DNA from: Paragordius varius
Taxonomy: Eukaryota; Animalia; Nematomorpha
Length of the DNA: 64,000 nucleotides
Assembly: GCA_964247055.1 (NCBI GenBank)
Contig: OZ176053.1
Location: 10,168,001-10,232,000 of the forward strand
Direction of reading: 5' to 3'
The translations under genes were made by a program, and so were the position numbers. Under the pieces are notes generated by a model. The model did not search any database and was not told the DNA's origin. It saw only the letters and a list, made by a program, of their open reading frames with translations. Positions 2,899 through 42,597 of the stretch are shown one piece after another. The number at the start of each line of letters is the position of its first letter. The stretch's first letter is position 1.

Positions 2899-3594
2899 AA
2901 GATAGTTTATTCAAATCTCATCTAACATTGTTGGCAGAAAAATCGTTTATTTTGTATTATTTTTAAATTTAGCTAATGCACACATGTCATGTTGAGTCAA
3001 TTTTTACCTTTGGGTTTTACCTTAAATTAAATATCAAGTATTTGTGAATGATGTTTTTCTATGTCGGTTCATTAAACCTCGATTTAGGTTATATAAAACA
3101 GGCTAAATTTAAACTGATTTTTTTAAAAATCTATTGAAGGAAACCTTTTTAATTTAAATTTATGCTTCTATCCTATTAAAAATAATATAAATAAACCAAA
3201 ATATCTAAATAAAATTTTGTTTTGAAAAAAGTTCCATGTCAAACTACTTCGAGGCCATTTTTATTCTATAAAATATTTGCAAAATATCATCTTCATCTAA
3301 TAATAAGGGTAAAATTAAAGCTGATTTTTTATTTAAATTACATCTAACAATGATAGAAATAGAAAAAGCGGTTTATTCCGTATTTTTTTTTCAATTTTAC
3401 TATTGTACACATGTCACGTTGACTAAATTTTTACATTTTAGTTTTAGCTTAAAATAAGTAATATCAAGTATGTTTAATAAAAAAATTTATATATTTCGGT
3501 TTATTAATGTTCTATAAGTGCAAAATTTTGCAATGGTTGGTATATAACCCTCCCAATTTGAATCGAAGGACTGAAAATGTGTTGTATCCAAGTG
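2899..3594 (+). mobile_element. Truncated/tandem additional copies of MITE family A
   Basis: Internal family-A sequence repeated twice; ends ...ccaatttgaatcgaaggactgaaaatgtgttgtatccaagtg|TTAA (3595-3598). Confidence 0.7.
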
Positions 3595-4444
3595 TTAATG
3601 TTGTATAACAAACTTTTGCTATGCGTTCAATTAATTCCATATTTTTTAAACAATTTAATTTGAAACAGATTTGGAATACCTAACGAAACCAATTATCGAA
3701 TGACCGATATGGAGGTGTTGCATCAAAGTGTCAATGTAAAAAAATCCTAATCTCAAATTTTTCCGCCGCCATTTTTTCTTTAATTTTAATATAGATCGCT
3801 AATATAATTACGCAAATAAATGTATAATATGGTTAAAAATTTATATTTAGTAATCTTTCAGGTTACTATTTTCCAGCAAATTTTATATTTATTGGTTTTG
3901 AACAGCTGTTTTCAATCGCGATTTGGAGCTGCCCCAATTTCAGAAGAAAAGGGGTGTTACAAGATTATATGAGCGGCCCGCTAAAATTTCGGATATTCAT
4001 AGGTTAAATTTTTTAATAAAAATGATATTTCCCATTCTAAAATAGTCTCTCGAATTGGCAAAAATATAGTTATATAGTGTTTGCATTTGTCAGCCCTATG
4101 TTAAAAAAATTTTTAATGCCACTAATAAATGTTTTGAGTAAAAAAAATACGGCCCGGGAGACCATTTGTGTTGAATGCCTTATAAAACTGTATCAAATAT
4201 AAAATTATCTAATCTAGGAGAATGTTTGATAACTAAATTTTAGCTAAGATTCCTTTTAAAACAGTAATTTTTTTACAAGATTGAGCTCTGGAATATAAAA
4301 CCCCAATATCGGACAAAAAAGTTAAAAGGTCAATGTTAGATATGATTTATGCATCCAGTTTTATGTCGCTTTCGGATATACAATATGACAATAAAATTTT
4401 AAACAACCGTTTCGCATATATCCATATACACGTGTTTTAACTTT

Positions 4445-7400
4445 ATGAAAGCTTTAATTTTAGTTGGTGGGTATGGAACGCGATTAAGGCCCTTAACCTT
4501 AACAAAGCCAAAATCATTGATAGAGTTTTGCAATAAACCAATTGTTGGGCATCAAATTGAAGCGTTAGTTGAAGTAAATAATTATCATAGTAGGCCGGTG
4601 TTAATCATATTGTTTTGGCTGTATGTTATCAAGCCGATCAATTGGAAGAAGAGTTAAGAATATATGAAGAAAGGGTATGAATTTTTGAATCATTAATAGC
4701 TAAAAATTAAAATAACTATATCTACCGAACTCAGTGAACCTTTGGGTACCGCAGGCGCAATAGCTCAAGCCAAGGATCACTTACTATCAGATCCTGGCGA
4801 ACCATTTTTTGTTCTTAACAGTGATATTATTTGTCATTTTCCATTTAAAGAAATGATTATCTTTCATAAAAAACATGGAAAAGAAGGCACTCTAGTGGTA
4901 AAACATTAATAAATTAATTTATGTATCATGCACTATTTCTAACTAATTTAAATATATCTACTTTTATGAATATCATTTTTGATTAAAGGCAATTAAATAT
5001 TTTTATTTTTACATTTTATACAATTTTGTCTGCCATTTCGATGTAAATATCAAATCTATATCATTTTGAGGAACAAACTTTTGAAGTTTTATAAAATTTT
5101 TTGAAAAGATGATTGTAGCCAATTTTCTATTAGTAATTTATTATATACTTTCAGGTGAAATAATTATAAACATTATGATGAAATCAATTAATCTAATCAT
5201 TTTTTATTATTTAATTGATTATTTTTTCACGTATATTCGGACTTTTTGATATTTTCCTTAGGCTAGACTCTTTTCGATATTGTTTTTCTATTTTTCATAA
5301 GTAATTGATAATTTGGCCTTGTTTTAAACCATTATGCATAATTTTAAAAATATAATAAAATCGAATAAACGGACAATAGTTACCATAATTAATTATCATT
5401 TTGCTCCGTAAAGTTTGTCCTTTTTTTTAAAAAATGTTAAAATTATATGAGCTTATATGTAATTTGTCTGTCTATTTTAGCTATTTCCCATATTTATAAT
5501 TTTGGATAAATTATTAAGCGTAATTATTTTAAAAATTACTCTACATAGTAACATATAAAAATACTAAATTTTTCATTTTAAACATTTGAATTAATATCAG
5601 GATATTTGGTTGTATGTTTTTTTTTCATAGCAATTATTATTAATATTTATCCTATAACACTTCATTTATTTTGACTTTGTCCTAGTTTACATTTTGGGGT
5701 AGTTTATCCCAGAGGTTAGTTTTGTAAATAAATACAGTTTTTTACAGTTATGTGGCTTATAGAGTCTAATTAGGACAGCTCCAAAACACGATTAAAACAA
5801 ACAGCTGATATTAAAATCAAAATATATCCTGTTGGTAAAATATGGCCTTGTTAATTATTTACATTTGCTAACCATAATATACATTTATTTACTTGTTGCA
5901 TTACCAATAAAAATATAGAAAAAAATGGCGGCCAAAAAGTTGGAGATTTTTAGAAAAATTTCTATAATACGCCCAAATGACTAAAGTAAGTATATTTTTT
6001 TAAATTCGGCTTAAAGCTTAAATACTTTTTATAATATTCAAATTTTGAATCGCTCTGGGATATAAAACTACCTCAAAAGGTAATGGAGTGTTAAAAGTGT
6101 CTATATAACTTCATTATTTAATAATTTTTGAATGTTTCAACTAATTTATATGATAGAACAAACTATTATTTATTTTTATTGCTGAATGTTTTAAATTATA
6201 TCAATGTGGTAAAATATATAGGTAACCAAAGTGGATGAACCATCCAAATATGGTGTTATCATATATAATACAGAACAAGATAACCTTATTGAACGGTTCA
6301 CGGAAAAGCCGAAAATTTTTGTCTCAAATAAAATTAATGCTGGTCTTTATATGTTTTCCCCATCATTCCTTTCACGCATTAAACCCGTCAAAACTTCCAT
6401 TGAAAAAGATGTGTTTCCCCTTATGGCTAGTGATCAACAATTACATGCTCTTGAATTGAAAGGTAACTTAAATTTTTTGCGATACGATTAGAAATATCTT
6501 GTATAAAAAAATTTAAATATTATTGACAAAAGTTTTTGACCGAATTATTTAAACTTTATAATTTTAAATGAGGGTTGTATTATATTTGGTAAGCCAACTT
6601 CACCTTTTCCTATTTCATAAACCTTTTAATAACATTGGCCATAAGAATAAGCATTATATATCGTAAAATTAATAATTTTAGTTACAATGCGGTTTTATAA
6701 AAAAACTTGCACTTTCATTTAGATTTTAATGTAACCATTTAAATTGAAAATCAACGTTACTATTGCAATTTTGTAAATCTTATTAAAGAATAATTATTTA
6801 ATTTATAATAGGGTTTTGGATGGATGTGGGTCAACCCAAAGATTTTTTATCGGGGATGTGTATGTACATGGAATCTGTGGTTGCTCCTCAAAATGAAAAG
6901 TTCTCTAAGGACGTCTCCAAAACCATTGCCGGTGATAATGTATCTCGACCCAGAATAATTGGAACTGTATTAATTGTAATACCAAAATAATTTTATATTT
7001 TATATGTTTTTACTCTTTTGATCTATTATATAAAATTACAAGTTTTTTAAAAATATAAGCAACAAAGTTAAACTCTTTTGTAAAAATAGTTTAATGTTCT
7101 CTATCATTTTGGGTTGCGAAATTAGTAATATTAATAATTATTATAAAATGTTATTTTTACATAAGTGTTATCCTAACACTTGGATACAACACATTCATTT
7201 TAATCCTTCGATTCAAATTGGGGTAGTTGGATACCCCAGGCTTGTTTAAAATCAAATACTTTAAAAAGTATGAAGCAATCGAAACCATGGCAAAATTTTG
7301 CACTTATATGACATTAATAAACCGAAATATATAAAAAAATTTATTCAAAAATACTTGATATTACTTATTTTGAGCTAAAACTGAAAGGTAAAAATTTAGC

Positions 7401-9226
7401 CAATGTGACATGTGTCAAATTGTAAAATTAAAAAATAATACAATAAACCGCTTTTTCTATTTCTGTCAATGTTAGATGTAATTTACATAAAAAATAAGCT
7501 TTAGTTTTACCCTTAAAATTAAATGAAGACGATATTTTGCAAAATTTTTGTAAAATAAAAATGGCGTCGAAGTAGTTTGAGATGGAACTTTTTTTTCAAA
7601 ACAAAATTTTATCAAGATATTTTGGCATATTTATATAATATTTATCAGGATAGAAGCATAAATTTAAATTGGGACCGTTTCCTTCAGTAGTTTTTTAAAA
7701 ATTTTAATTTAAATTTAGTCTGGGGTATTTAGATACCCCAATTTGAATCGAAGTGTTAAAGGTTGTAAAAAATCACCATCAAAACATATAGTTATATTTG
7801 GTTTTTTTAATTTAGTTTATCTATTATATAAATATGATCATTTTTATGATATTATAGGACGAAAGTGCTGAGATTGCCGCAGGTGCTATAATCGGACCAA
7901 ACGTTGTGATAGGACCCAAATGTAAAATTGAAACTGGTGCCCGTTTAAAGAATAGCATTCTCATGCCTGGCGTTAAGATTGGCTGTCACACTTGGATTAA
8001 CCATTGTATTGTTGGTTGGAATAGTAATGTAGGCAAATGGGTAAGTATGCGTCCATAGTAGATTCAGAGTTTTTTTTATTTTCTATATAGGTTAAAAATG
8101 TTTTATACAACAATTACTTTAAAAAGTTTAATTGGTTAAAATGTATGAAATCCATGTAATAGTTTATTGTTGCATGGCTTATAAAGTTTGAAGAAGGGTG
8201 TTGAATAAAATATTAATTTACAACAAACATAAAATACAATATATTAATTGGACGATGTTTTTTGAGTAACATAAATAATAAGCGTAAATAAAGTCAAAAT
8301 TATATAAATTATTAGTTCGCATATCCATATAATTATAATCGGCTAAAATTAAAAATTCACTTTCTACATCACTGTAGTTTATATTAATTTTTTTACATTT
8401 TATGTGCTAAAAAATCCTACATTAAATTTTCTATAATTTGCATTATCGCAAAATACAAAACTATAATAAAATTACGAGTTTAAAATAATAAAATAGTGAA
8501 ATTAAGTTTCCCAATAGTATATTATTAAGTAAACTCAGCGAATGTTTTGCATACCATACCTATTTAAGCATAATACAGTTCTTAATTTTCAGCCAGCTTA
8601 ACCTTAGAGACAAAATAACATTCAATTGGATACCGCTGCCAAAATCACTTGGACAAAATAACATTCAATTGGATACCGCTGCCAAAATTACTTGTACAAG
8701 AATGGCTTTTTCAACTTAAACTTAAACCAAATTTTCTCATACCAATTAAAATTATTAGATTCAACACTTGCCGCTGTAATAAAGTCTCGTTAATGAACAC
8801 AGTTATAACGGCTAAAATCAGATCATTAATTATTTTATTTGCATCTATAATTTTGAAAACAAAACCAGAAGCTATCATACCTTTAAAATTATCATATATA
8901 AGGAATTCCTTATTTGTGATTATTACGGTTATTTAAGAGTAATTTGTGGCGGTTAGGAACTTTCATTACATAAAACTAACATTTTTTTTTTAACATATAA
9001 TTATATCTAGACTTGATTATAAACTTAAACCTCCGGCTATATATGTAAATACAATTAAATTATCATATTATATTTTATTTATCTATTGTTATAGGTTAGG
9101 ATGGAAAACATATCTGTGTTGGGAGAAAACGTTGAGGTTGGTGATGAAATTTACATAAATGGTGGCAAAATTTTACCCCACAAATCCATAACAACGTCTA
9201 TAAGGGAGCCACAAATAGTCTTATAA
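4445..9226 (+). CDS. GMPPB: Mannose-1-phosphate guanyltransferase beta (GDP-mannose pyrophosphorylase B), 7 exons: 4445-4573, 4594-4674, 4700-4897, 6222-6462, 6812-6975, 7858-8040, 9095-9226
   Basis: Spliced translation [19 protein letters not shown]...EPLGTAG...[10 protein letters not shown]...EPSKYG...[16 protein letters not shown]...[13 protein letters not shown]...IGPNVVIGP...[11 protein letters not shown]...[11 protein letters not shown] matches the GMPPB family throughout; all introns GT-AG and in phase. Confidence 0.97.
5658..6090 (+). mobile_element. piggyBac-type MITE, family B (GMPPB intron 3)
   Basis: ataa|CACTTCATT... and ...aaaaggtaatggagtg|TTAA; subterminal inverted GGGGTAGTTT(T)ATATCCCAGAG motifs; internal similarity to 16045-16565 and 14070-14386. 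Confidence 0.7.
7177..7755 (-). mobile_element. piggyBac-type MITE, family A (GMPPB intron 5)
   Basis: ctaa|CACTTGGATACAAC...cttcgattcaaattggggta ... taccccaatttgaatcgaagtg|TTAA; reverse complement of the 2252-2894 copy. Confidence 0.8.
8610..8696. repeat. 43-bp tandem duplication in GMPPB intron 6
   Basis: acaaaataacattcaattggataccgctgccaaaat(c/t)acttg occurs twice with period 43. Confidence 0.9.
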
Positions 9227-10073
9227 ATTATGATATTGTGATGACAAAAATATGCATATATAATTTTTATTTACATATACCTGGGATGTATATATATACT
9301 TTAACAAAATTATTTATTGAATAAATCCAAGTATATCATGATTAAATTTATTTATAGCATTTGGAGCAATAAATTAAAAAAACTTAATGAGCAAAATGTA
9401 AAATGTTTTTAAACATTTGAGAACACCTTTTTGGGGTGGTTTACCCCTGAGAGCATAATTGTAAAATATCTACATGATATTGGGCCGAATTTAAATAAAT
9501 TATTTTTTAGCCTTTTAGGTGATTAATCTAGAAAAATATTTTGTAAAAACTATTAAATTATAAAATACCCTCTCTCAAACTTTTTAGCGTTTTTTTTACT
9601 AAATACTTAAAAACACGGGAATTTGATACCATGTCATAAAATTAACTAAAACGCATTTGATTATGTTTTAATAAAATTTCAATATTATTTAATTTTAGCA
9701 TCAGGTGTTTTTTATAACTCTATTTAAGTAAGCAATCTGAAGTTTAGAATGTCAATAATATAATCATTGATAATGTATTTAAGCCAAAATACCTTTAAAA
9801 AATTTATTAGGATTGGAAGGGTAATGAAGTGCTAAAGCTTTATCCACCATGTAAAATATTACGACTGTTTTACAATAAGAGTACCAGATAGCACATTCAT
9901 CAAAGGGCAATATACTTTTTATTATTACCCAATAAAAATGCTCTTTGCTGTATATGCTAACTGGCAATATTTAATGTGATATCATTGTATACTTACTTAT
10001 ACAATAATTTTATATCATATAATATTTTTTGATTGTTGTCTATACGTTGTTGAATCTCATCAAAAACTTGATT

Positions 10074-14802: not shown

Positions 14803-15974
14803 TCAATCATCATCATCGAACACTATATGATTTTTAGGTTTGGGAAGAGACTCTTTTAAATCCATTCTTTTTCGTATATTTGCCTTATTATTTATATTAG
14901 TATCAATTTTTATTGTATTTGATACTTTGAGTTTTCGTTTTGCAGCCCAGGATGGGTGCAGGTTTTCATTTTCCTTGTTATCCATTTCAGTTTTTTGGAA
15001 GGGTGGCCTAGTTTTGCGAATATTATTATGGTTATTGGACATGTTACGCTCAATTTTATTTGCTTTGGGTAATCGAGAAAATGAATTTTCGTTTGAATTC
15101 CCAAAATTGTTTTTCTTCTTGGTTTTATTTTTGTACATGTTATCCTTTTGTACTTTTGAGAATTTGGCATCATAACGACTAGTAAGTGTGTCCATAAAGG
15201 CTGTTTGAAATTTCATGCCTTTGTTTTGAGATTCAACAAAGATGTCTTTCTTCTTAACTTCAGGGATTTTGACCACAGTATTATCACTGAAAAAAGGATC
15301 AAACTCTATGGCATTTGATTCGGTCAAAGCTTCGCTTTTGATATTAGATTTGGGTTCAAATGTTATGTATTCGGATTTTCCTTCGGATAAAAGCGTTTGC
15401 AGATTTAATTTTTGCACGGAATTGCTTTGTGATACATTTTTTTCGTTCAATGGAGGTTTGATTTTAACAAGTTCACATTGTGAAACAATTGGTTTTTCCA
15501 AAGTGGGTAACGATTTTTTGGTATTTGGTTTATTTTTTCTTAATACAATAGTGTCGTTGATTATCTTGTTAATGTTATCCAATGAGCATTTATGAAGCTG
15601 AATTAATGCATTTGCGTAATGGGTAAGTTTTTTACCACTGGCTAGATTATTTAACAAACTTTGTTCTGATATCTAAAATTTATATAAAAATTTACAATTT
15701 CATTCGGGACATATAGTTTTCTAAAAAAAAATAAAATAATATCGTCTGGTTTATATGTTTTTATTGTTTTAAGGCACTCCAAAAGCTTCAAAATTTTAGG
15801 ATTATCTATATTCCGCCTTAAATAATATATCATAATAAACTTTTTTAATCCTTTTATTCTGCTTATAATTTTGGCTGAGTATCTAATTTTCTCCATCTTA
15901 GCATATTTTCTTAATTTAATTTTGATGTCGTTTAAAACCGCCTTACTATTAGGTTGTGGATTTTCGTCACACAT
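14803..15974 (-). CDS. SRFBP1: Serum response factor-binding protein 1 / BUD22 family; 2 exons (15696-15974, 14803-15672) separated by a 23-nt intron
   Basis: N-terminal helical region (KLRKYAKMEKIRYSAKIISRIK...IKTYKPDDI), low-complexity middle, diagnostic C-terminal LHPSWAAKRK and ...HIVFDDDD end; the two ORFs join in frame via a GT-AG intron at 15673-15695. Confidence 0.88.
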
Positions 15975-27674: not shown

Positions 27675-30600
27675 ATGGACAATGAAAATATTATTAAAAA
27701 GCGATCATTTAAAAGACCAACTACTATCAATAGATTTTTGTTTCAATCCACCTGTAAAGTAATCAAATTATAATCTTAGGAAAATCATTTACAACCGATT
27801 TTTGGTATCAGTTTTCACACATTCTACTCTCCAGTTCATGGTACATTATTTTGTACTGTTGGAGGCAATCAAGTTTTTCAGTATTTAACCTAAGGCCAAT
27901 ATATATGCAAGCACTTTAACTGGGCAGATAAAGCGGCTTCGTACATATATTGACGATGTAAGTTCAAAATTTTTTACGGATCCGTTAAATTTTGTTACAG
28001 ACGGTTGAAAAATAACTTTAACAATCTGTAATATTTTTTAAGCATTGGTTAATTATATGAGCTATTCAATTAAAATTTACTACTTTTGACCCATTTTATA
28101 TTTTATCCTCTATCATTATCATTAAAAATATGTAAAAATCTATGTTAACAATATCGATATATATTTTAAAAAAATGTTTTGTTAATCTGTTTTTCGGCCT
28201 AAAATGTATATTTTCAAGTCGTCTAAAAAATGCGGGAGATAAAATGATTTGAACAGATTGTATTATTTTTATTTTCGTAAGAATTTCGCTTCGTCACATT
28301 GTGTCCTGACTAGATTTCTGTTTTCTGCACCTTGCATTTTTCTTTTCTCCAAACGATATTTCATAATTTACTTATCCGGCTTTTTAATATTTAAGCTTAT
28401 TAAATTAAAATACATTTTTTTGAAATATCGGGTAGTCTACGATAAACGTGACCTGCCCATCTCATAAATTTGGTTTTTAAGTAGAGGGCCGACATTAGCA
28501 AGGACTAAATTGTTTTTTAAATAAACTATAAAATATATTGTTTTCATTTTAGAGTGATTGAAATTCTTATTCATTTGTATAGGGATTCGCCATTAAATGA
28601 CGGTACACATGTTTCGATTTTTTCTTGATCTAGCTTATTCTATGGTTATATTAAGCGATTCGAGGTCTTTTGTTATTGTCCTGAACCATGAGATATGAGA
28701 TCGGCCGGATTTCGCTGGTTCAACCGAATAATTTTTTATAGTTTTAAGAATATGGTATTATGCCGTTTTCAACATGTCCGCCCATTGTAACCGGAGATTC
28801 TTGATGACGTTGTTGATGGGGTTGAGATTGAGTGTATGGTACGGGTTTATGGATTCGGTATAAATGAATTTAGAAGGATTGTGTGCGAATAATATTGTTT
28901 TCAATAATTTTGATTCAGCGTTTATGAGTTTGGATTCATTTGTTTTTGACATCGGCCAGGATTCGGATCTGTATGTGACGACGAGACGAATGGCAGTTGT
29001 GTAAATGGCACACTTAGTTTGTAGTTTGACGAATATATTATTTATTAATTTAACGAATGGTATTTTTTCCACATGTGATATGCTATGTTTAATTGCATGT
29101 TCTAATCCGCCACTGGCTGATATCATCGCCCAAATAGCAGTGCTTCTATTTCCATATTGAAAGGGTTGGAAATTGAGTTGATTTTTAAATTCATATTATT
29201 ATTACTATATAAACATTTCGAGCATTTGTAATTTTCATCGTAATCATTTAAAGTTTTAAGACTATTACATTTTTTGTGTACCCATAGAGGACAAGAATTA
29301 CAGCGTACGGAGTTTGATTTAACTTCGTTTTTACATATGCTGCATGGGTTTTTAGAGGTGAAATTATCACACATTAATTTAGTTTTGGAGAAATTGACTT
29401 TAAGCCCGTAACTTTGTAGGGCCATTCCACAAACGAATTTTCGCTACGAGGCATTCGGATGTCGATGTTATTAGGAGATCATTTGCCATGTCTTATTTCT
29501 TCCATAATGACATTGAAGAGAGTCGGGCTTAATATGGATCCTTGCTGGAGTACTCTTATTATTAAAAATTTTTTAGTCCAAACGGGGTTTTGATTTGGGC
29601 TCTGAGTATATCGGTATAAGAGCATTATTTAGGATATCAGCCATTTGTCAACGCCTTGACGCCTAAAGCCCATGGTATAAGATCTCTTAAAATGGCATCG
29701 AAGGCTCGTTCCATGTCAAGAAAAGCGTAGTATAAAATAGCTTTTTTTAATGTATGCGCTTTGAAGTTGTTTTAGCGTGAATATGGCATCTATTGTACTT
29801 TTATTTGGCCGGAACCCGCATTTCGTTTAAATGCAATTTGGGTAGGATTTTGGAGAGAAATACTTTTTCATATACTTTCATAGTGTGATCTAATAACTTT
29901 ATTGGACGGTAGGATTTGGGCAGAAGGGGGTTTCCTTTTTTGTGGGAATGATATCGCTGTTTTCTCAGTCAGGAGGGATTTTTTCGTCTTTTATTATATT
30001 GTTTAATAAAGTTGTCAGATATGAGTCGATAATCTGAGGGTCAGTCGGTTTAAGCATGTCGGCCGTGAGTTCTGAAGGGCCAGGGAGTTTTTTATTTTTC
30101 ATTTTGCATAAAGCGGTATGGATTTCTGATTCAGTTAGGTTTTCAGCACCTTTGAGTAGGTGTTGATGTGATAGGAGTAGTAATGGGATTGTTTAGGTTT
30201 AAAATTTCTTAAAAGTAGTATCAATTTTGGTGGAAAAGTGAAAGAGCACATAAAACTGAAAAATTTGGCACATAAAATTTGGTTTAAGGAAAACCAACCG
30301 TTAAATAGAAAATTGTATCTAAAAACAAATGTTTATGTTGAAAAATTATCAGGGAAACCAAAAATAAGAAGCTCTAAAGTATGCGAAAGTATCGATTAAA
30401 AACAAAACTGTGTATAAATGGGCTAAAAGCATAAATAATAATAACACATCCGAACACTGATTTTAATGGAATTTGAAAACACTGTCTACAAATTTTTTAA
30501 GAGTTATAAGGAGGTGTGAACCACCCGCCCCAAATTTTCACTTAAAATTAGTGAGAGTAAACAATGCAATAATAAATGATCCAGCTATTGTTAAAAACAG

Positions 30601-33600
30601 CTATCATAACTGATAACTACTTTTCAGTAATTTTTAAACTTAAACAATTCCATTACTACTTCTATCACGTCGACACCTACTCAAAGCTGCGCTGAAACTT
30701 AACAAGATATCCATACCTCTTTACGCAAAATGAAAAATAAAAAACTCCCTGGCCCTTCAGATCTTACGGTCGACATGCTTTAGTGGTTGAAATTTTAACA
30801 AGTTTATCGTAGTCGTTGGTTTGCGCAATAATTTAGCGCAGGCGGTGTGATATTCACAAAATTAATATAAATTATGTGTTAGCCGTCCTATTATTTCGGG
30901 CTTTAGATGATCTGTATTTCGAGCTGTCGCTAATATTTCCTAGGAAGGTAAAAATCGCTCAACCCTAGAAGTTTAAAATGAGTACGGTTTTGTTATATAC
31001 ATTAAATTAGAGCTCGGATTATTAGCTGTGGAAATATTATCGGCACAATTCCATATTTTAAGATTAGCACACTTTTTTTGCAACCATCTGCATTATGATA
31101 AATGTCCAGGCCGCAGTTCATATGTTTCAATTGATTGAAGAATATTTATCGATGAATCCATGTAAATAAGATTATTGCAGAGATTCGTCAAATCACCATA
31201 TATCACCTTTATACGCTATTTTCTCCTTTCAAAGGAGGTAAGCGTGTTATAGTTTTTCATTTGTTTCTGTCTTGAGCTTGTTGGATATCGATACTGAGGA
31301 AATCTAGGTCTTCTTGAATGGTGGATTGCCAGGTTTTATAAGGCCTTCATTTTTTGTTTTTATTATTGGTTGAATAAGACTGTATGAACTTTATCCAGTT
31401 TGTGTCTTGCGCTCTGTAGATGTGACCAGCCCAACGCAAACGGTATTCCCGGATAGCTGTATTAATTGGTTTAATTTTTAGAGTTTGATAGGGGCAAAAT
31501 TTGGCTTTGAAATCGTATATGTTGGGGTTATGTGCGAAAAGAATGGCGTTTAGGATCTTTTGCTCACCCTTTTGCAGTTTTAGTAGATTTGATTTAGTCA
31601 TAGGCCAAGTTTCCGTACCATATAGTATAGCAGGACGTATAGCCGTCATAAAAATTTTTGCCTTTGAGCTGAGTAAAACGTATTTATTATATACTATTGT
31701 GCGCAGACTATGATATTTTTTCCAGGCGTCTTTGATTCTATGCGATAAGGCCGATTCTATACCACCACCAGCATCTAAAGTATCGCCTAGGTATGTAAAT
31801 TTGTCTACAATTTCGAATAAAGTGGAGGATTCGGGGATTCTATGGTTAATTAATTGGTTGTACTGCACGGGGGGCAGATAAAGTTTTTATTATCATATAA
31901 ACTTTTTAAAGTGGAGCATTTTTTATGTACCCACTTTAAACATCTGTTACACTTTATTGAGTTTGACTTTACATTTAATGAGCACACGGAGCAGGGCCAT
32001 TTTATTGTCCTGTTTTCATCGCACATAAGTTTGGTCTTAGATGTATTTACCTTCAAACCGAATTTACTTAGGGTATCCTTCCATAAATTTAACTTTTCCA
32101 TTAATTCCGGTGCAGATGTGGCGCATAATATTAAGTCATCAGCGTACAGAAGTTCAAAAGGTAAGCCTTTTCGTATGTCTTTTGTGATCTCCTCCATAAT
32201 TAGGATAAATAAAAGGGGGCTCAATATAGAACCTTGGTGTAGGCCGTTTTCAAGTGGGATGGGGTTCGTATCGCCAACGCTTGTACGGATTACAGTTGAG
32301 GTGTTCTTATATAGTGCTTCTATTATTTGTATCATATTTTCCTCTCTATACCTTGCCTTCTGAGCGACCAAGCAATCAGGTGTTGCGGGACTGAGTTGTA
32401 AGCCTGTTCCATGTCTACAAACGCATAGTGGAGAGGAAGATTTCTCAGGTGAGCATTTTGTAATTGGCGGATTATAAATATTGCATCTATAGTACCCTTG
32501 TTTTTTGAAAATCCAAATTGCATAGAATCTATGGTGGAGTGTCGACGGATTCTGTTGGCTATCAGATTTTCAAAGATTTTAAAACCATGTTCTAAGATGC
32601 GTATGGGACGAAAGTTGGAAACGTTAAAACGATCTCCTTTGCCCTTATAAATTGGGATTGTATAGCTTTTCAGCCAATCAGAGGGTATGATATTATTTAA
32701 TGCTATGTTGTTCGCAAGATTTTTGAAACCATCCAAAAATAAATTATGATCTAGGGCTTTGAATACATCATTTGTGATTTCTGATAAACCTGGGCATTTA
32801 TTACTTTTTAAATTCTTTAAACAAAATTCTATTTCATCATTAGTAAATGGTTGAAATGAAGAATATGTTGGGTGAGGGTTCGTGATTTCCATAGGTATTT
32901 TAGGTTTATTAAAAATATTAAAAAAGTGGTTATACTATGTGGCTTTTATAACTTGGGCGTCGTGGGTTATAGTATTATCGGGTAATCTAATTGCATTTGT
33001 TTCGGCCCTTATATTATTGTCATATTTTACCCATCTATATGCAGATTGGGAAGATGTGGCTTTTTCTAGTTCTTTCCCTTTTTCTTCGCCCATTTTTCTC
33101 ATCGATGCTCTGATGGCTTTACGTCAATCTTTCTTTGTTTGGAGGTAATTTATTTTGCTGTCAGCACTTTTTTCTTTTTTCCATTTTTGGAAATCAGATT
33201 TCTTTTTCTTAATTATATCTATCAGGGATATTTGCCACCACCATTTGAATGCTTTTTTATTATTAGATTTCATTCTGCCAACATTCTTCTCTAGTGATTC
33301 AATGCAGCTATATTTTAAGGAATTCCAGAGGTGTTCCGGAGAGGTTGTTTTTAATTTAAGGGAACTTTCCGTGTCGAGTTTCAATCTATTATTGATATTA
33401 TTATCGACTAATTTTTTATATCTAAATTTAGGTTTATTTTGTCCAATGGGTGATTGCGTTGATGTAGATTTATATAATTCAGCAATAATGAGTTTGTGCT
33501 GTAGTTCTAAAGCGGGGATAGATCTAATATTTTTAAAATGGGATTTGTTTTCTTTTATTGACATAATTATGTCAATCATCGAGCGATTTGTGCCGGATAT

Positions 33601-36600
33601 ATAGGTTAGCAAGTTATTATCATTTTTTTAAAAAAAGGTATTAATGATGGATAAATTATTATTACTTGCGAAATCTAATAATATTTTACCTTTTTCATTT
33701 AAATCATCCATTCCAAAACCTCCATGTACTGAATGTAAAGATTCTTTACCGAAGTGAGAGTTTAGGTCACCCCCAATAAATATGAAATCAGTGTGTGGAA
33801 TAGCAGTGACTTTTTCATATAAAGCCAACCAGAATAAATCCTTACAGTTTGAATCACAATTGATTTGTGGGGCGTATACGGATAAAATATGATAGATTTT
33901 TTTGTTGATTTGAATTTTTAATACTAATAATCTTTCAGAACAGTAATCGATGGATATGATATTGGGTACAATGGAATTTTTGACATAAACTCCGACACCT
34001 GATGAACGGCCATTAGATCCAGACCAGAATAATTTATAATCTAGAATGTTTTTGGAACCAGTGTTCTTCCAGCGAGTTTCTTGGACGCAACATATTTCGA
34101 TGTTCTTGGAGAGCAAAGCTGCTATTTCCTGACTCCCTCTGTTAAAGATGTTATATTTTAAGTGGCCAGACGAATGATATGATTAGTATGAAGTGTGGGA
34201 TTCGAACACATCTTATGTTTCGTTATAATGTATTGATATGATAAGAACAAGCAAAAAGCAAGAAAGAAAAGTGAATTAGCGATAAAATACTGAAGTAAAT
34301 TATGGAGCAACCGTTTTTTACGCCGTGTATGCCCTTACTAACCGGCAACCAGAGAATCTGGAGTAAAGTAAATAAACGATTAAAGAAAGATGGTGGTTAC
34401 AGCTGTTCTCACCATAGAATGCCTTAATATTTTATTGATTATAACTAAAATTAGGATGAACTTTTTGACGCTAAATTATTTAATTACATTTTTTTAGATA
34501 CGCACGAGTCTTTAGTTAACGAATAATGTTTAAAGGAAAGATAAAGCAATAAATTAAAAAGAAAAAATTTAAAAATTAAAGGACAAATATTAATTTATCC
34601 AAAATAGTTAAAACAATAAATTTACTCATTAACTAAAAGCGATAAGAGAAACTTAGTATGTTATCCAAAATTTATTTATCATAATATTTATCAAATCTTA
34701 TAAAACTTCTTATGTCATCCGAATACTCTAAAAAATAATTTTTATCCAGATAAAATATTACCATATTTTTACCATATTATATATAAATTTTTTATCAGAG
34801 TGATGAGATTTATTATACATGCGCTTGGACAATGAATGAGGAAAAACAAACCAAAGTCATACTTGGGGGATGTAAAGGCATTATACGTATTTTGCATTTC
34901 CAAACCAAAAATAATGCAATGGAACATTTGTTGGGCCATGGTCAATCTATTAATGATATTAAGGTTCACCCACTAAATCCTAATCTCATATTAACTGCAA
35001 GCAAAGGTTTTTACTGATTACACTTTTTAATGTTTAAAGGGGTAATATACAAACCATAACGCTTAAACATGCAAATGTTTGTTTATTAAAAAACTGATTA
35101 ATATATTTCAGCATTTTATACAATTTAATAATTAAAAAAATTTATAAATCGAGTAATTATCTGTGGTATTTGTTCTTTTTAAGGTTGATAACAAATAACG
35201 TTGTATGCTATTGTTTCGATAAATATTTAAACATTAAAAATTACATGTATATATATATATATATATAATATTTATAGATCATTCGATTAGGTTATGGAAC
35301 TTAAATACAAAAGTCCCCGTCGTCATATATTCCGGTGTAGATGGTCACAGAGATGAAGTCATCGCTTGCGTATATTTTTTCTTTATTTTGAAAAATATAA
35401 AACAAATTTTACAAAGAATTTTTTGATCATAAAAACATATTACGTTAGGACATTCATAAAAGTGGAAAATATTTTGTTTCCTGTGGAATGGATCATGCAA
35501 TTAAAGTTTGGTCCCTCGGATCTGAGTCGGATTGCAAAATCTTAAAGGCCATTGAAGCGTCACATAGTTATATCGGTGCAGAAAATGGGTAAATTTTGAA
35601 ATTTAAATAAATTAATAATTACTACTACCTATTCACCTATTTTATTTTGCTTCCATAAAAAACGTATAATCATTTTTTCGTGCTTTTTCCATAAGATCAA
35701 AAACCTGTTTAATAATAAGATTTTGGACGGGTTAAAATATATTTATCTTATGACCGCATATATCAATTTTTGACATTATTAACATATGGAGTATAAAAAA
35801 ATATATACGATAGCTTAAATTTAATGAGAATTTTAACAATAGTAACAGTATTTGAACCTTTTTGTTGATTAATTTCGTATTGTGCCATTTATAATATAGA
35901 TATCTTATTTCATTATTAATAACTGATTAGATTGTTAATGATTGCATTTATAATTTTTCGGAACGGTTTATACTTTTTGATCGATCGTTAATCATCATTT
36001 GCAAAATTGTTAGTTAATCACAATTGTGTGATGGAAAAAACCCTCTTTAACTATAATATTTTAGGACACGATTGTAACCTAATTAATAACACATTCAATC
36101 ATTTTTAAGTTATTAATTTCATTGGGTTTAGTTCTTTTGCGGTACGTAGTAATTAATTTTTGCCTGATAATAAACTTTATAAGCATTATATTTAGGTATT
36201 TAAATAAAGAAAACGAGATATCCGTTTATTTTAAATTTTTATACCATTTTTTTTAAATTTTATTACCTTTTATCATGCAGGGCGCAAAAATCATTTGAAA
36301 CAGAGCTGTGCCATACACCATTATTTACTACACGTAGCATCCATAAAAACTATATTGACTCAGTGCTCTGGTTTAATAACATTTTGTTTTCCAAATCTTG
36401 CGAAAATATTATATCGTGTTGGAAGATTGGAAATTTCGATAATTTCGCCCTCCAATATTATAGTAAACAAGAAACCCGCAAAAAAGGTTATAAAGAAAGT
36501 TATTTGTTTAATAAACAATATCATAACTAAAAATCATTCAATTCGATTTATAATATGTTTTTTTAGATGAATCACTTTCTTTGCCTTATGAATCGATTGA

Positions 36601-37297: not shown

Positions 37298-40200
37298 TTA
37301 TTTCGTTTCAACATTTTTATTCGGCTGTGTAGATATGTATTCAAAATCTATGATATCATCATAAACTGTAATATCAAAGGATATTGAGCTTGTATCGGGC
37401 GTTATTTTAATTCTTTCATCATATACTACACCATTTATATTATCAGCCAAGGGTATGTAAGTAGCACATTTCCAATACGTATTATCAGCAGCCAAGGTAT
37501 TAAACGTAGTCGGTTTTGTTGTATTAGCGTGTAGTGAATATAAAAGTGGATCTAACAAATTTATTTCAAACCAAAACAATAATCCATCCATAAAGTGTTC
37601 ATGGCTATTACAAACTTGAATTTTGTATTCTTTTGTTACACTTTTTATTTTATGGTGTAAAATTAATGGTTGTTGTGTAAGTAAATCTTTTAATTGCCAT
37701 GTTAATATATGAGACGAGGTGGTTGGATCACAAAGTTTTGAGGTTGATGATGATATTGCATTGCATAATGGTATGAAATTATTTTGATATGGATCGTCGT
37801 TATAATTTGATCTATCTTGAGCTGATTGTATATCGAAATCCATAAAGATAGATGACTACAAATAAATTGATGTATTATATTAGCATTATAAAAATTAAAA
37901 TTCATATGTACTGATGAAAATGGTAAAAAAAATAATTAGGGAGAATATACGTTAAACTAATAATCTAAGAAAAAAATAGATTGTGCTATCAAAAAAATTT
38001 ACTTGTGCATAAATAAAATTAAATTTTTTGCTTACGTAATCAATGGGTATTATTATTATATATTGCAATTGAAATTTAACATAAAAAATACTTGAAATGG
38101 ATTCATCACTTTTGCGATACCGTATTCTTCGACAAACCCCTGGTCCAGTAAACATGTTTTTTGCCTTAGATAAGCACTTTGTATTGGTGTTGCATTCAAA
38201 CTCATATTATAAGGGATTATAATTATATCAGTATTCCCTTCTCCATTAACATTCCTGGTGAGTGTTGAATAATAGTCGTTTAACAATGCCAACAATGTGT
38301 GAAATTCTTCTTGTAACAAACCTCGTGGATCTATCAGGGCTTCGATACTGATGCATAGTATATGGCAACAAGAATTTGTTTTATTTGGCTTTTTGAGCAT
38401 ATCATCATCATCATGATGCCAAACCCATATTTTATGAGATAAATCAGATAAATTACGGGGGGTATTTGATGGCCTTGTGGAATATCGGGAAAGATATTCC
38501 TTTAATGATGAAAAGTTTGAATAATAGCCTATGGCCGTATTATGCGTTTTAAGTACAAAATTGAAAATGTGTGGTGTAATTGATAGCGGTTTCCCTGCTT
38601 TTCCATTCAAGCCAGATATATCGTGTAAAACATATTGTTTAACCGCATCATTACTTCTAAAAAAATTAGAGCATAATATCTTTTCTAAATATTTATAGTA
38701 TAAAATATTAATTAAAAAATAATTAATTAACTCATACCTAATTACATTGGTAAAAGCATTCAAATACAAGGACCAATAAAAATCATCATTTATGAGTACA
38801 ATTTCTTTTAGCGTTTTGAGATTATTCAATTCAATCGGTGCATGTTCCAGAAAACCATTTATAGCCAAATCCAATTCGGTATTGGGAGAAAGGTATGAGG
38901 TTGGTACCCCATGCATCATAAAATTTGTGTTGGTTTTATTAACAACAAATGATAAATAATTTTCTTTCAAATAAACTTCCATCAGAATAATCTCATTCAC
39001 TTCCAAATAAACTATGGTAATAAGGATTATAAATAATAGAAACGACATGGACATTTACAATAAACACCAAGTTAATTGTGAGTGAAAAAAAGGCAAAACT
39101 ATTGAAAATGGTTGGTACTTGGCTGAGCCATTGGATATATGGCCTGTTCCCAGCATGAATCCCGTTGCAAAGAATCAAGTGTAAATGTTTGCCCGTTAAT
39201 ATCGTTTAGAGATTGTAAGACAAATGAGATACAAATGGCATCTAACCAACCCGCACTCTGACATTTAGTTTGAAGGGTTAAATAAGGTTTTGAAGAGTTA
39301 ACTATGTAAAAATTTATATATATTTCACGATATAAAACGCTAAATATAATGTTAATTAGTTAAAACAAAAATAATTTTTAGGTGTAGCAGTTTTATTTCT
39401 AAATAACCTAAATATTATTATACAAAAGGGTAAATTGAAAGTTAATAACCATATTTCTCAAATTCATTAAGATATTCCACATTTCCCAATTGATATGTAA
39501 AAAGCTCCATGAAAGGTACTAAATACTTGATATTTTTATCCATATTTGGATTAGAATTCGATACTAAGGATATATGATTGTATACTATACCATATTCATT
39601 GTATTGTGTCAATTTTTCTGATAAATATGGATCAGATAGTGTTTCCCCATCTGGATTCATCTCTTCGAAACATTTAGTATGAGCAGACATTCCATTAAAA
39701 CTGAGATCTGATATGTATTTGCACCTTTTATGTTAAAAAAATTATTCGTGAGAGCATTGTTATATATAAAAAAATACCTTTTAAGTCAATTTTAATTAAA
39801 TAAACCAAAAATGATATTGATAACACTGCTCAACAAGGTTTTGCACCACCCCATTATTTTTGCATTTTCTGATACCTAATGGCATGGGAAGGCCAAAACA
39901 AAAAAGAAAATTGAGGCCTAGGATATTTCCGAAATTTAATTTTTAAATTTGTATTTAATTTAAAAATAACAATCATTCCTCGTGTATATATGTTTAAATA
40001 TTCAAACGAACAAGTCGATACAAATAATATTCCATGCATGAATAACAAAATTCTAGGCATTAAATAATACTAAACAAGCTAAGAGCCAAAGTATTAAAAA
40101 TCTAAAAGGGGCTTATGTATAGTGTGATAAATCCGGGCGGATGCAGAAGCTCTGCATATCCCCCAAGCGATCCAATTATGCCAGATATGGCAAACAATAA

Positions 40201-42597
40201 GTAATCGTAAGCCCGATAAGAGAGACTTGCAAGCAAAATCCAGGCAAATTGACATGTCAAATTGACCAATTCACAGAATAAAGTTAGATAAATTCTACAA
40301 TTAAATGAAATAAAAAGATTAGGTAAATACAAATGGTCCAATCCCATAATAGTAAATTCTACTAAAAGTGGCTACACAACATCCATCTGAAATTAAAAAT
40401 ACAAAACAACCAATAATTTTAAAAAATAAAGTATATCCACTAGGTATAAATAAAGGATTTTTTGTAAGAACCAACTCAAGAAAAAAAGCCTAGTAAGTAC
40501 TCGAAAGAACGAAAACTAACAAAAAAATATAGCCTATATAAAAGTCGAAGGTTTAAACCATAGAATGCCTTTTTTAGTATTTTTTTAAAAAATTTTTATA
40601 CGTATTAAAAATTCACTTGAAAGAAAAAGACTAAATTTTGACGTTTAAGTCCGTACTATTTTTTTCTCTCTGATATTTAAATGACATATTTATATTCAAA
40701 AGATAGAGTTTAAAACGCTTTATTAAATGATATTAATTTATAATATAATAACATTTTATTATAAAGTTAAATGTTTCTCTCGATTTTCTCTTGTTTTTGA
40801 AAAATTGAAAAACCAATAATATTTCAAAATTCTGATTGGCGGGATCAAAAAATTTTTCACATTCGGTTTTAAAACACTGAAATTAGTCATAATTTAAAAG
40901 TTTGAGTGGTGGTGCTCATAAATGTCCAAATTTGTCGACTAGTGTAATTTAAGTACCATATAGTTTGAATTCCCCCTTGAACAATTCAAATTCACCCTAA
41001 AATATATCATGTGTTTTTTATTTTTGAGATTATAAATTACCTCTATTTTATAATGTTTTTATAATATGAAATTCTATTTAAAATTAAATATAATTCTAAT
41101 TAATGACGAGTTATATTATCCTGAAAACACATAATTTATTTGTAGGGTGAATTCAACAATTACAAAAACTTATTTAGAAAAGTTGCTTGGAAAATATTAA
41201 TTTTACTCTGCAACTTATCGAGTTCTAAAATTTTGCGGGCCGTACGAAGAGTTTCGGAGGGCCTCGTCTTGGAAATATTGAATTTTTGTGTATGGACAAG
41301 AGTAAAAAATCAGTTTTAATTAAATTGTTTTGCTCTAAATAAAGCTTTATATATGAACAATAATATCTCTCGTTAATATATTATCCAGTTATGTACCAAT
41401 GTGGTAATGGGTAGAAATATTTTTATTTTAGTAATTTTTGGTTGTTGGTAAATGTAATTACATTTTAGTTTATGAGCCAATAAGTATATAACCTCGTATT
41501 TTACTTATTAAAATAGCAGGACATTTTTAGGTATAATTGCACAATTTTTTCGCTTCTTTATATAAATCGAATATCTTATGGTAACTGGTTTATGTTTGCT
41601 CTTAGTGTAGCTATAATTAAAACAAAATAGCGAACTAAATTAAAAAAATCTAGCCGAAAAGACCCTGTGATTATTTCACACAAAAAAATAATCCTATTTT
41701 CCTAAAAAAGTAAAAAGGGTCAATTTACAAAAACAGTTGGCACAAAAAAGTTTGAAAATATGAACGCAGATTAAACCTTTTTGGGAAACATGATTATAAT
41801 AATTTGTAATTAGAATAACAAACAAGCTAAAGGTAATAATTATAATTTGTATTTTATAAAAATTACCTTGTTTTGAAACGAATATGTTGACTTTCAATTA
41901 AAGCAAAATTTATAATCGAAGAGTGTGGAATAATTTTGGCATGTTTACCTGCGAAGCTTGTCCAAAAATGTAAAAGAACATCGTTAATCCCTTCGCCAAA
42001 AAATCCGGAATCAAATAATTCCAAAACTAATATATCAATACCTCTATTTATTAGTGAATATACTTGGTATATCTTTTTTGCTACAATCAAATGAGGATTT
42101 TTCGAAACAGATTATATTTGAGAAATTTTTAATTATATCGCTGCAAATTTTATAAAGCAATGGATTATGTTCAAAGGCATATATGTTGGATGTAAATTTA
42201 TTGGACATACAACTATTATTAAGTTGCAATAGAACCTTAATATTCCACATCCTGAGCCAATATCCAGAACAGCATCAGTATTTTTAATATTGCTTTTAAT
42301 GCTGGAGAAGTAAAAATTATTCCTGACTAAATCATTTAGCATATTTATATGCCATTTAGATAAAAACTGATTTATAATAAGATTTTTAAAATTTTTCGAT
42401 AATGTCTTACAAATTTTATTGCGTTTTTTTGACGACAAATTAATGGAAATATTTAATTTATTTATAGCTTCATATATATATGAGTGTCTGAAATAAATGT
42501 AAATTTACTGGTATAAAAATTTCCCTAATTCGTAACATAATTCAGGATCTTGTGGGTGTTTATTAATAAAAGAATGAAACGATTCCGGATCGCCCAT
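37298..42597 (-). CDS. PRMT9: Protein arginine N-methyltransferase 9 (TPR-like N-terminus + two methyltransferase modules); start codon tentative
   Basis: HPQDPELCYELGKFLY (TPR-like), KWHINMLND, VLDIGSGCGILS, LELFDSGFFGEG, DPYLSEKL, GWLDAICISFVL, DSCWEQAIYP (CW rather than HW loop, as in PRMT9), second module LIDPRGLLQEE...LLFWFEI...YWKCA. Exons include ~42509-42597, 42236-42487, 42064-42212, 41867-42041, ~39451-39724, ~39119-39300, 38092-39010, 37298-37857. Confidence 0.9.
40955..41165. mobile_element. Degenerate family C MITE
   Basis: ccccttgaacaattcaaattcaccctaaaa... and ...gggtgaattcaacaatt; boundaries approximate. Confidence 0.6.

Follow-up and report, generated by a model that had tools for sequence, protein, structure and literature searches.

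The window analysed here is a stretch of 64,000 nucleotides (nt) from the genome of the horsehair worm Paragordius varius (contig OZ176053.1, positions 10,168,001 to 10,232,000), and it carries on its plus strand a gene whose first two introns appear to be 20 and 25 nt long. The gene encodes GMPPB, the catalytic subunit of GDP-mannose pyrophosphorylase, also called mannose-1-phosphate guanylyltransferase beta. The gene model comprises seven exons and 375 codons with no internal stop, and its introns measure 20, 25, 1324, 349, 882 and 1054 nt from the 5′ end to the 3′ end (Table 1). All six of them start with GTA and end with TAG. We identify the product as GMPPB from an N-terminal NTP_transferase domain with a GGxGTRLxPLT motif, followed by a C-terminal GMPPB_C beta-helix. 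The exons were searched one by one against solved structures, and the first three matched human GMPPB (7d72_K) or Arabidopsis GMPPB (8yre_D). The domain order is the same as in these two proteins, with NTP_transferase leading into the left-handed beta-helix of GMPPB_C, and the alignment is colinear from residue 1. The Paragordius protein is about 375 amino acids long, compared with 360 in human. The oddity is one of gene structure only, and the protein itself is unremarkable beside its human and Arabidopsis counterparts.

Table 1. Exons and introns of the Paragordius GMPPB gene, in positions of the window, with the best structure or Pfam match of each exon where one is given
Feature	Positions	Strand	Length	Phase	Sequence features and matches
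GMPPB exon 1	4445..4573	+	43 codons		ATG to ...EALVE, with nucleotide-binding motif; 7d72_K residues 1-42, E 2.6e-17
GMPPB intron 1	4574..4593	+	20 nt	0	gtaaataattatcatagtag
GMPPB exon 2	4594..4674	+	27 codons		...YEER; 7d72_K residues 44-70, E 0.018
GMPPB intron 2	4675..4699	+	25 nt	0	gtatgaatttttgaatcattaatag
GMPPB exon 3	4700..4897	+	66 codons		LKIKITIS...GTLV; 8yre_D residues 71-134, E 1.6e-19
GMPPB intron 3	4898..6221	+	1324 nt		gtaaaaca...atatatag
GMPPB exon 4	6222..6462	+			...ALELK plus 1 nt; NTP_transferase PF00483, 1e-10
GMPPB intron 4	6463..6811	+	349 nt	1	
GMPPB exon 5	6812..6975	+			...IIGTVLI
GMPPB intron 5	6976..7857	+	882 nt		holds an element resembling a miniature inverted-repeat transposable element (MITE)
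GMPPB exon 6	7858..8040	+			DESAEIAAG...GKW; GMPPB_C PF25087, 4e-12
GMPPB intron 6	8041..9094	+	1054 nt		gtaagtat...tgttatag
GMPPB exon 7	9095..9226	+			...PQIVL, stop TAA

When the two short segments are removed, residues 1-43, 44-70 and 71-136 of GMPPB abut across them with no residue lost or gained relative to 7d72_K and 8yre_D, and the match of exon 2 to 7d72_K is exactly in register. Keeping either segment ends translation by residue 72. If intron 1 is retained, the frame stops at 4655-4657 and leaves an open reading frame (ORF) of 70 amino acids, and a ribosome entering intron 2 in frame would meet GTA and then the stop TGA. An earlier note on this DNA had described both GT-AG segments, and the coordinates, lengths and sequences that it gave match the letters of the window; its claim that their removal restores an ungapped GMPPB is borne out by the colinearity of residues 1-136 with the human and Arabidopsis structures. 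Judging from base frequencies, the chance that GT and AG would stand at both spacers on the exact break-points of homology is about (0.049 x 0.049)^2, or roughly 6e-6.

Exon-sized GMPPB fragments of other organisms were traced to genomic contigs, among them L002, a metagenome scaffold from ENA, and L004, a metagenome contig, both of which are eukaryotic. In L002, a 43-codon exon 1 ending in ...DALVE is followed by a 51-nt GT-AG intron, a 27-codon exon 2, a 52-nt intron, an exon running from LGIRITIS to GTLV, a 55-nt intron and then VTKVEEPSKYG. L004 is laid out in the same way, its first intron measuring 58 nt and its second 49 nt. The first two intron positions and their phase 0 are common to Paragordius, L002 and L004, at the same codon boundaries. 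Exon 1 aligns without gaps to both contigs at 81-84% identity, exon 2 is an ungapped 27 codons in all three species, and exon 3 is 69-70% identical to its counterparts; the position of intron 3, which is 1324 nt long in Paragordius, carries the 55-nt intron in L002. The relatives returned by a word search with exon 3 did not exceed 74% identity, and no transcript-derived or hairworm fragment was among them. In a third species, L006, the first two GMPPB introns are displaced by a few codons, so the intron positions are widespread yet not universal. That the 20- and 25-nt segments stand at boundaries occupied elsewhere by ordinary short introns is what a shrinkage of old introns would predict, and it is hard to reconcile with random insertions.

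The length of the first segment is reproducible among samples. We aligned contigs of four public genomic DNA runs (X1, X3, X4 and X5) to positions 4300-9300. The X1 contig covers 4414-4658 with no differences, the X4 and X5 contigs, from a second sample, cover the same interval with four substitutions and no gaps, and the X3 contig, from a sister taxon, covers 4364-4603, where it differs only in lacking 2 nt ahead of the ATG. Because all four contigs cross 4574-4593 without an insertion or deletion, the 20-nt length of intron 1 is reproducible, and the assembly deletions that the earlier note had held out as a possible undoing of its reading were not found there, these independent DNA contigs all keeping the 20 nt. 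Over 4400-5310, no insertion or deletion was reported in any of the four runs.

Neither the GMPPB_C domain nor exon 3 has a second locus in the 110.6-Mb assembly, and the remaining NTP_transferase matches in the genome are distant paralogues, so the gene in the window is the organism's only copy of GMPPB. Read in the spliced frame, 14 of the 18 exonic variants between samples are synonymous and four are non-synonymous, against an expectation of 21.6% synonymous (P = 6e-7). The single variant of exon 2 is synonymous, as are all variants of exons 4 and 7. GMPPB is under purifying selection.

On these grounds we consider it highly likely that the segments at 4574-4593 and 4675-4699 are genuine U2-type GT-AG introns in phase 0, lying at old positions, shrunk near the physical minimum and housed in a single functional GMPPB gene. 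The DNA further suggests that they are very probably constitutive introns, which would be excised from the RNA as a matter of course. Several observations pull the other way. Exon 2 taken alone is a weak match to solved GMPPB (Table 1), a branch-point motif is not confidently assignable within 20 nt, and intron 2 is crossed by none of the contigs listed. Among the public runs, none recorded as RNA contained the stretch, and the four that we compared are genomic DNA, covering introns and repeats. Protein matches to exon 3 and to ABCF1 likewise included none derived from a transcript of this species. An annotation-free count of GT..AG segments that join two open frames, made against control end motifs over 264 kb (the window and two 100-kb blocks), was noisy and did not separate GT..AG from the control boundaries. 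A stricter count of GTA..TAG segments gave 15 at 20-24 nt, a weak excess at most, since the 5-nt bins on either side mostly counted 6-10 and one of them reached 14.

We regard it as improbable that the two segments, while real introns, are spliced inefficiently or conditionally, with retained transcripts destroyed or yielding a stub of 70-72 amino acids, so that the pair would work as a dosage or quality-control valve. Either retained segment does give an early stop, and an AG at 4589-4590, three bases ahead of the 3′ AG used, makes the choice of 3′ site in intron 1 delicate; GMPPB, however, is a housekeeping gene that exists in one copy and evolves under purifying selection, its sequence holds no hint of regulation, and conditional splicing is in any case compatible with the segments as true introns. 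Less credible still is a decaying pseudogene in which the segments are frameshifting insertions that happen to resemble introns. Although the unspliced frame breaks after 70 codons, this is the sole GMPPB in the genome, all seven exons are open and separated by six GTA...TAG introns, and the two segments fall exactly at intron positions of other species, with splice dinucleotides that chance would supply as rarely as estimated above. The excess of synonymous variants makes a pseudogene very unlikely. We give just as little credence to an artefact in which longer true introns were collapsed in assembly or polishing: the region is AT-rich and of low complexity, and the uncrossed intron 2 leaves such an error some room, but the X1, X4, X5 and X3 contigs agree on 20 nt for intron 1, and between 4400 and 5310 none of the runs has a reported insertion or deletion.

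The machinery available to remove genuine introns of this size looks conventional. We found U1 small nuclear RNA (snRNA) at 124.3 bits, with the 5′ end ACTTACCTG, and U2 snRNA at 177.7 bits, with a GTAGTA branch-site box. A U2AF-large-like gene has colinear exons at C8:1375939-1380291, and SF1 is represented by an SF1-HH domain on C5. U2 genes are numerous and clustered, with at least 35 matches over the cut-off, mostly on C3 at 0.26-0.53 Mb, and U1 genes are clustered on C6 at 0.56-0.63 Mb. U12 snRNA was not detected in the genome search, a result that, according to its control, says nothing about absence. Because U1 and U2 are canonical, U2AF-large-like and SF1 genes are present and the tiny and long introns share GTA...TAG ends, the data point to one conventional major spliceosome and not to two systems or a reduced machine. 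The "unusual bimodal splicing system" proposed in the earlier note finds no support in these observations, nor did its suggested inspection for reduced splicing parts turn up any reduction in U1, U2, U2AF-large-like or SF1.

We propose that an ordinary major spliceosome would remove the tiny introns by recognition across the intron (intron definition). U1 would pair with GUAAAU, or GUAUGA, at their 5′ ends, and the A recognised by U2, SF1 and U2AF would lie a short way before the closing UAG. The 5′ hexamer and the final TAG are 8-13 nt apart, a space that offers several candidate A residues but no polypyrimidine tract. The second sample (S3) has an A>T substitution at 4581, position 8 of intron 1, and the A at this position is probably not the branch point because it varies naturally. 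The AG at 4589-4590 must be skipped, because its use would put a TAG in frame. Together, the 4581 variant and the skipped AG would favour position 11 or 14 for the branch A of intron 1.

The downstream introns of GMPPB (349-1324 nt) are long at least partly through the insertion of repeats. Intron 5 holds a MITE-like element of 587 nt, of which the genome has roughly 10,000 copies. It spans about 7174-7760 and is bounded by terminal inverted repeats of 69 nt, one at 7199-7267 and the other at 7692-7760; its read depth is some 10,000-fold higher than in unique sequence, and loose ends lie at 7174 and 7759/7760. Intron 3 contains a repeat at about 5636-6136, present at roughly 200x. The association of obligatory tiny introns with long, repeat-filled ones in the same gene, which the earlier note had described, is thus upheld. 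A second copy of the MITE, inverted and with 83-88% similarity, is found shortly before the start of GMPPB, at about 3090-3540.

Further candidates for introns of this class occur in three other genes. An EED-like gene on the plus strand of the window begins with GT-AG segments of 21 nt (27759-27779) and 22 nt (27873-27894). The exon between them (exon 2, 27780-27872) has EED chains as its only matches, positioned as expected though with a weak E value of 0.82, and exon 3, which at 21 amino acids is too short to score, had no match among solved structures; introns of 21 and 22 nt in EED are plausible from this arrangement. Inside a long EED intron, we also observe a degraded non-long-terminal-repeat retrotransposon (28758-34116, minus strand), in which endonuclease-like and reverse-transcriptase-like ORFs, read by eye, are frameshifted. 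In a BUD22/SRFBP1-like gene, a candidate 23-nt intron, gtaaatttttatataaattttag (15673-15695, minus strand), joins open frames of 99 and 289 codons in phase 0; a word search with the 284-amino-acid BUD22-like ORF gave no homologue to confirm the junction. In ABCF1, a candidate of 24 nt with an in-frame TAA, gtataattcaatactaaaatatag, lies at C2:5074259-5074282 on the plus strand, between a conserved first exon and the main ORF of 618 codons, and that first exon (MPRKNR...) matches residues 1-65 of a Gordionus protein. The candidates in EED, the BUD22-like gene and ABCF1 are all at the 5′ ends of their genes. In GMPPB, EED and the BUD22-like gene, tiny introns occupy the first place or the first two places, and long repeat-bearing introns follow downstream, which raises the possibility of a 5′-end bias of the class.

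Elsewhere in the window, the minus strand at 37298-42438 has ORFs of 332, 181 and 101 amino acids, the last with a PRMT-like MLND..RN..Y / LDIGSGCGIL motif. From these motifs, the ORFs may belong to a PRMT7/9-type methyltransferase gene; the pieces of them tried against Pfam gave no match.

The ABCF1 gene also bears on the lineage of the genome. Its ORF (L031:4297-6138) is matched best, with 1054 bits and 82% identity, by a protein of Gordionus sp. m RMFG-2023, and the next best matches listed, among them Lingula, ticks and spiders, are at 59-69% identity. Because the closest ABCF1 relative is Gordionus, the genome is neither myxozoan nor dicyemid and falls outside both lineages of animals with published tiny introns. 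A ciliate, or another organism with a non-standard genetic code, was considered and ruled out, since no stop interrupts the GMPPB exons in the standard code and ABCF1 has its match in an animal. The GC content is 25-36% in the window and 27% in the two extra 100-kb blocks, values that fit the Gordionus montsenyensis genome, for which 26.93% GC and 63.8% repeats are reported. The Paragordius assembly amounts to 110.6 Mb in 44 contigs, and published hairworm genomes are reported at 200-300 Mb.

Hadjez et al. (Mol Biol Evol, September 2026), who compared the genomes of 51 animals, found introns of less than 30 bp only in two parasitic lineages, myxobolid myxozoans and Dicyema japonicum (PMC13644364). 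Median introns in myxobolids are 22-27 bp, further lineages were predicted, and tiny introns were linked to genome reduction; in myxobolids and Dicyema, little more than GTa and AG remains of the splice signals, and the AG is preceded by a few A residues that are weakly conserved (PMC13644364). The earlier note had rightly counted dicyemids, ciliates and nucleomorphs among the known cases of 20-30-nt introns and had omitted the myxobolid myxozoans (PMC13644364). Nematomorphs are not mentioned in the text of the survey (PMC13644364), the word intron is absent from the Gordionus genome paper and from a comparative hairworm/mermithid preprint, and a full-text literature search for hairworms and introns returned nothing relevant.

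At 20 and 25 nt, the first two GMPPB introns fall below 30 nt in an animal nuclear gene. They belong to a known kind, the ultra-short spliceosomal introns of animals, in a lineage for which that kind is unpublished. We think it likely that horsehair worms, or at least this lineage with its 110.6-Mb genome, are a third, independent group of animals that routinely splices introns of 20-30 nt, and the first ecdysozoan example. If this is true, introns could shrink to the extreme without any streamlining of the genome, for the genome is not compact and repeats lie in the long GMPPB introns. A third lineage in which one essential gene has 20-25-nt introns beside kb-sized ones, at least one of which carries a MITE, would weaken the 'compaction' explanation. 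Experiments could then address the smallest geometry at which an animal spliceosome, conventional in other respects, can work. Standard gene finders and read aligners do not accept introns as short as 20 nt, so that genes like GMPPB are at risk of being annotated, wrongly, as truncated or frameshifted. The value of the GMPPB case lies in a length at the short extreme, 20 nt, in an exact match in position to introns of about 50 nt elsewhere, and in evidence of a single copy under selection.

The closest likeness is to the myxobolids Henneguya salminicola, Thelohanellus kitauei and Myxobolus rasmusseni, which likewise have GT-AG introns of 20-27 nt at conserved positions (PMC13644364). As in Paragordius, their signals approximate GTa...AG, the introns are too short to house a polypyrimidine tract, both U2 and U2AF are of the conventional type, and longer introns coexist with the tiny ones (PMC13644364). 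Myxobolids are cnidarians, whereas Paragordius is a relative of the ecdysozoan Gordionus. The tiny class sets the genome-wide median of myxobolids, at 22-27 bp, whereas in Paragordius GMPPB it accounts for two of the six introns, both at the 5′ end. Splicing in myxobolids is backed by Iso-Seq, whereas the tiny introns of GMPPB are known here from DNA. Dicyema, a spiralian parasite, is said to have a reduced genome. Like the myxobolids, Dicyema japonicum has introns shorter than 30 nt whose positions are conserved and whose signals are reduced (PMC13644364). In contrast to Dicyema, Paragordius has a genome of 110.6 Mb, and at least two of its GMPPB introns bear repeats.

Beyond animals, the introns of the Bigelowiella nucleomorph are 18-21 nt long. 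Among ciliates, mini-introns measure about 25 nt in Paramecium (PMC5014332) and 15-16 nt in Stentor (PMC13644364). These mini-introns resemble those of GMPPB in size, in their GTA...TAG-type ends and in the penalty on retention, which is a frameshift or an in-frame stop. They differ in their setting: the genomes of ciliates and nucleomorphs are those of single-celled organisms or organelles, and almost every intron in them is tiny, whereas in Paragordius they occur in an animal gene that is read in the standard code and has kb-sized introns too.

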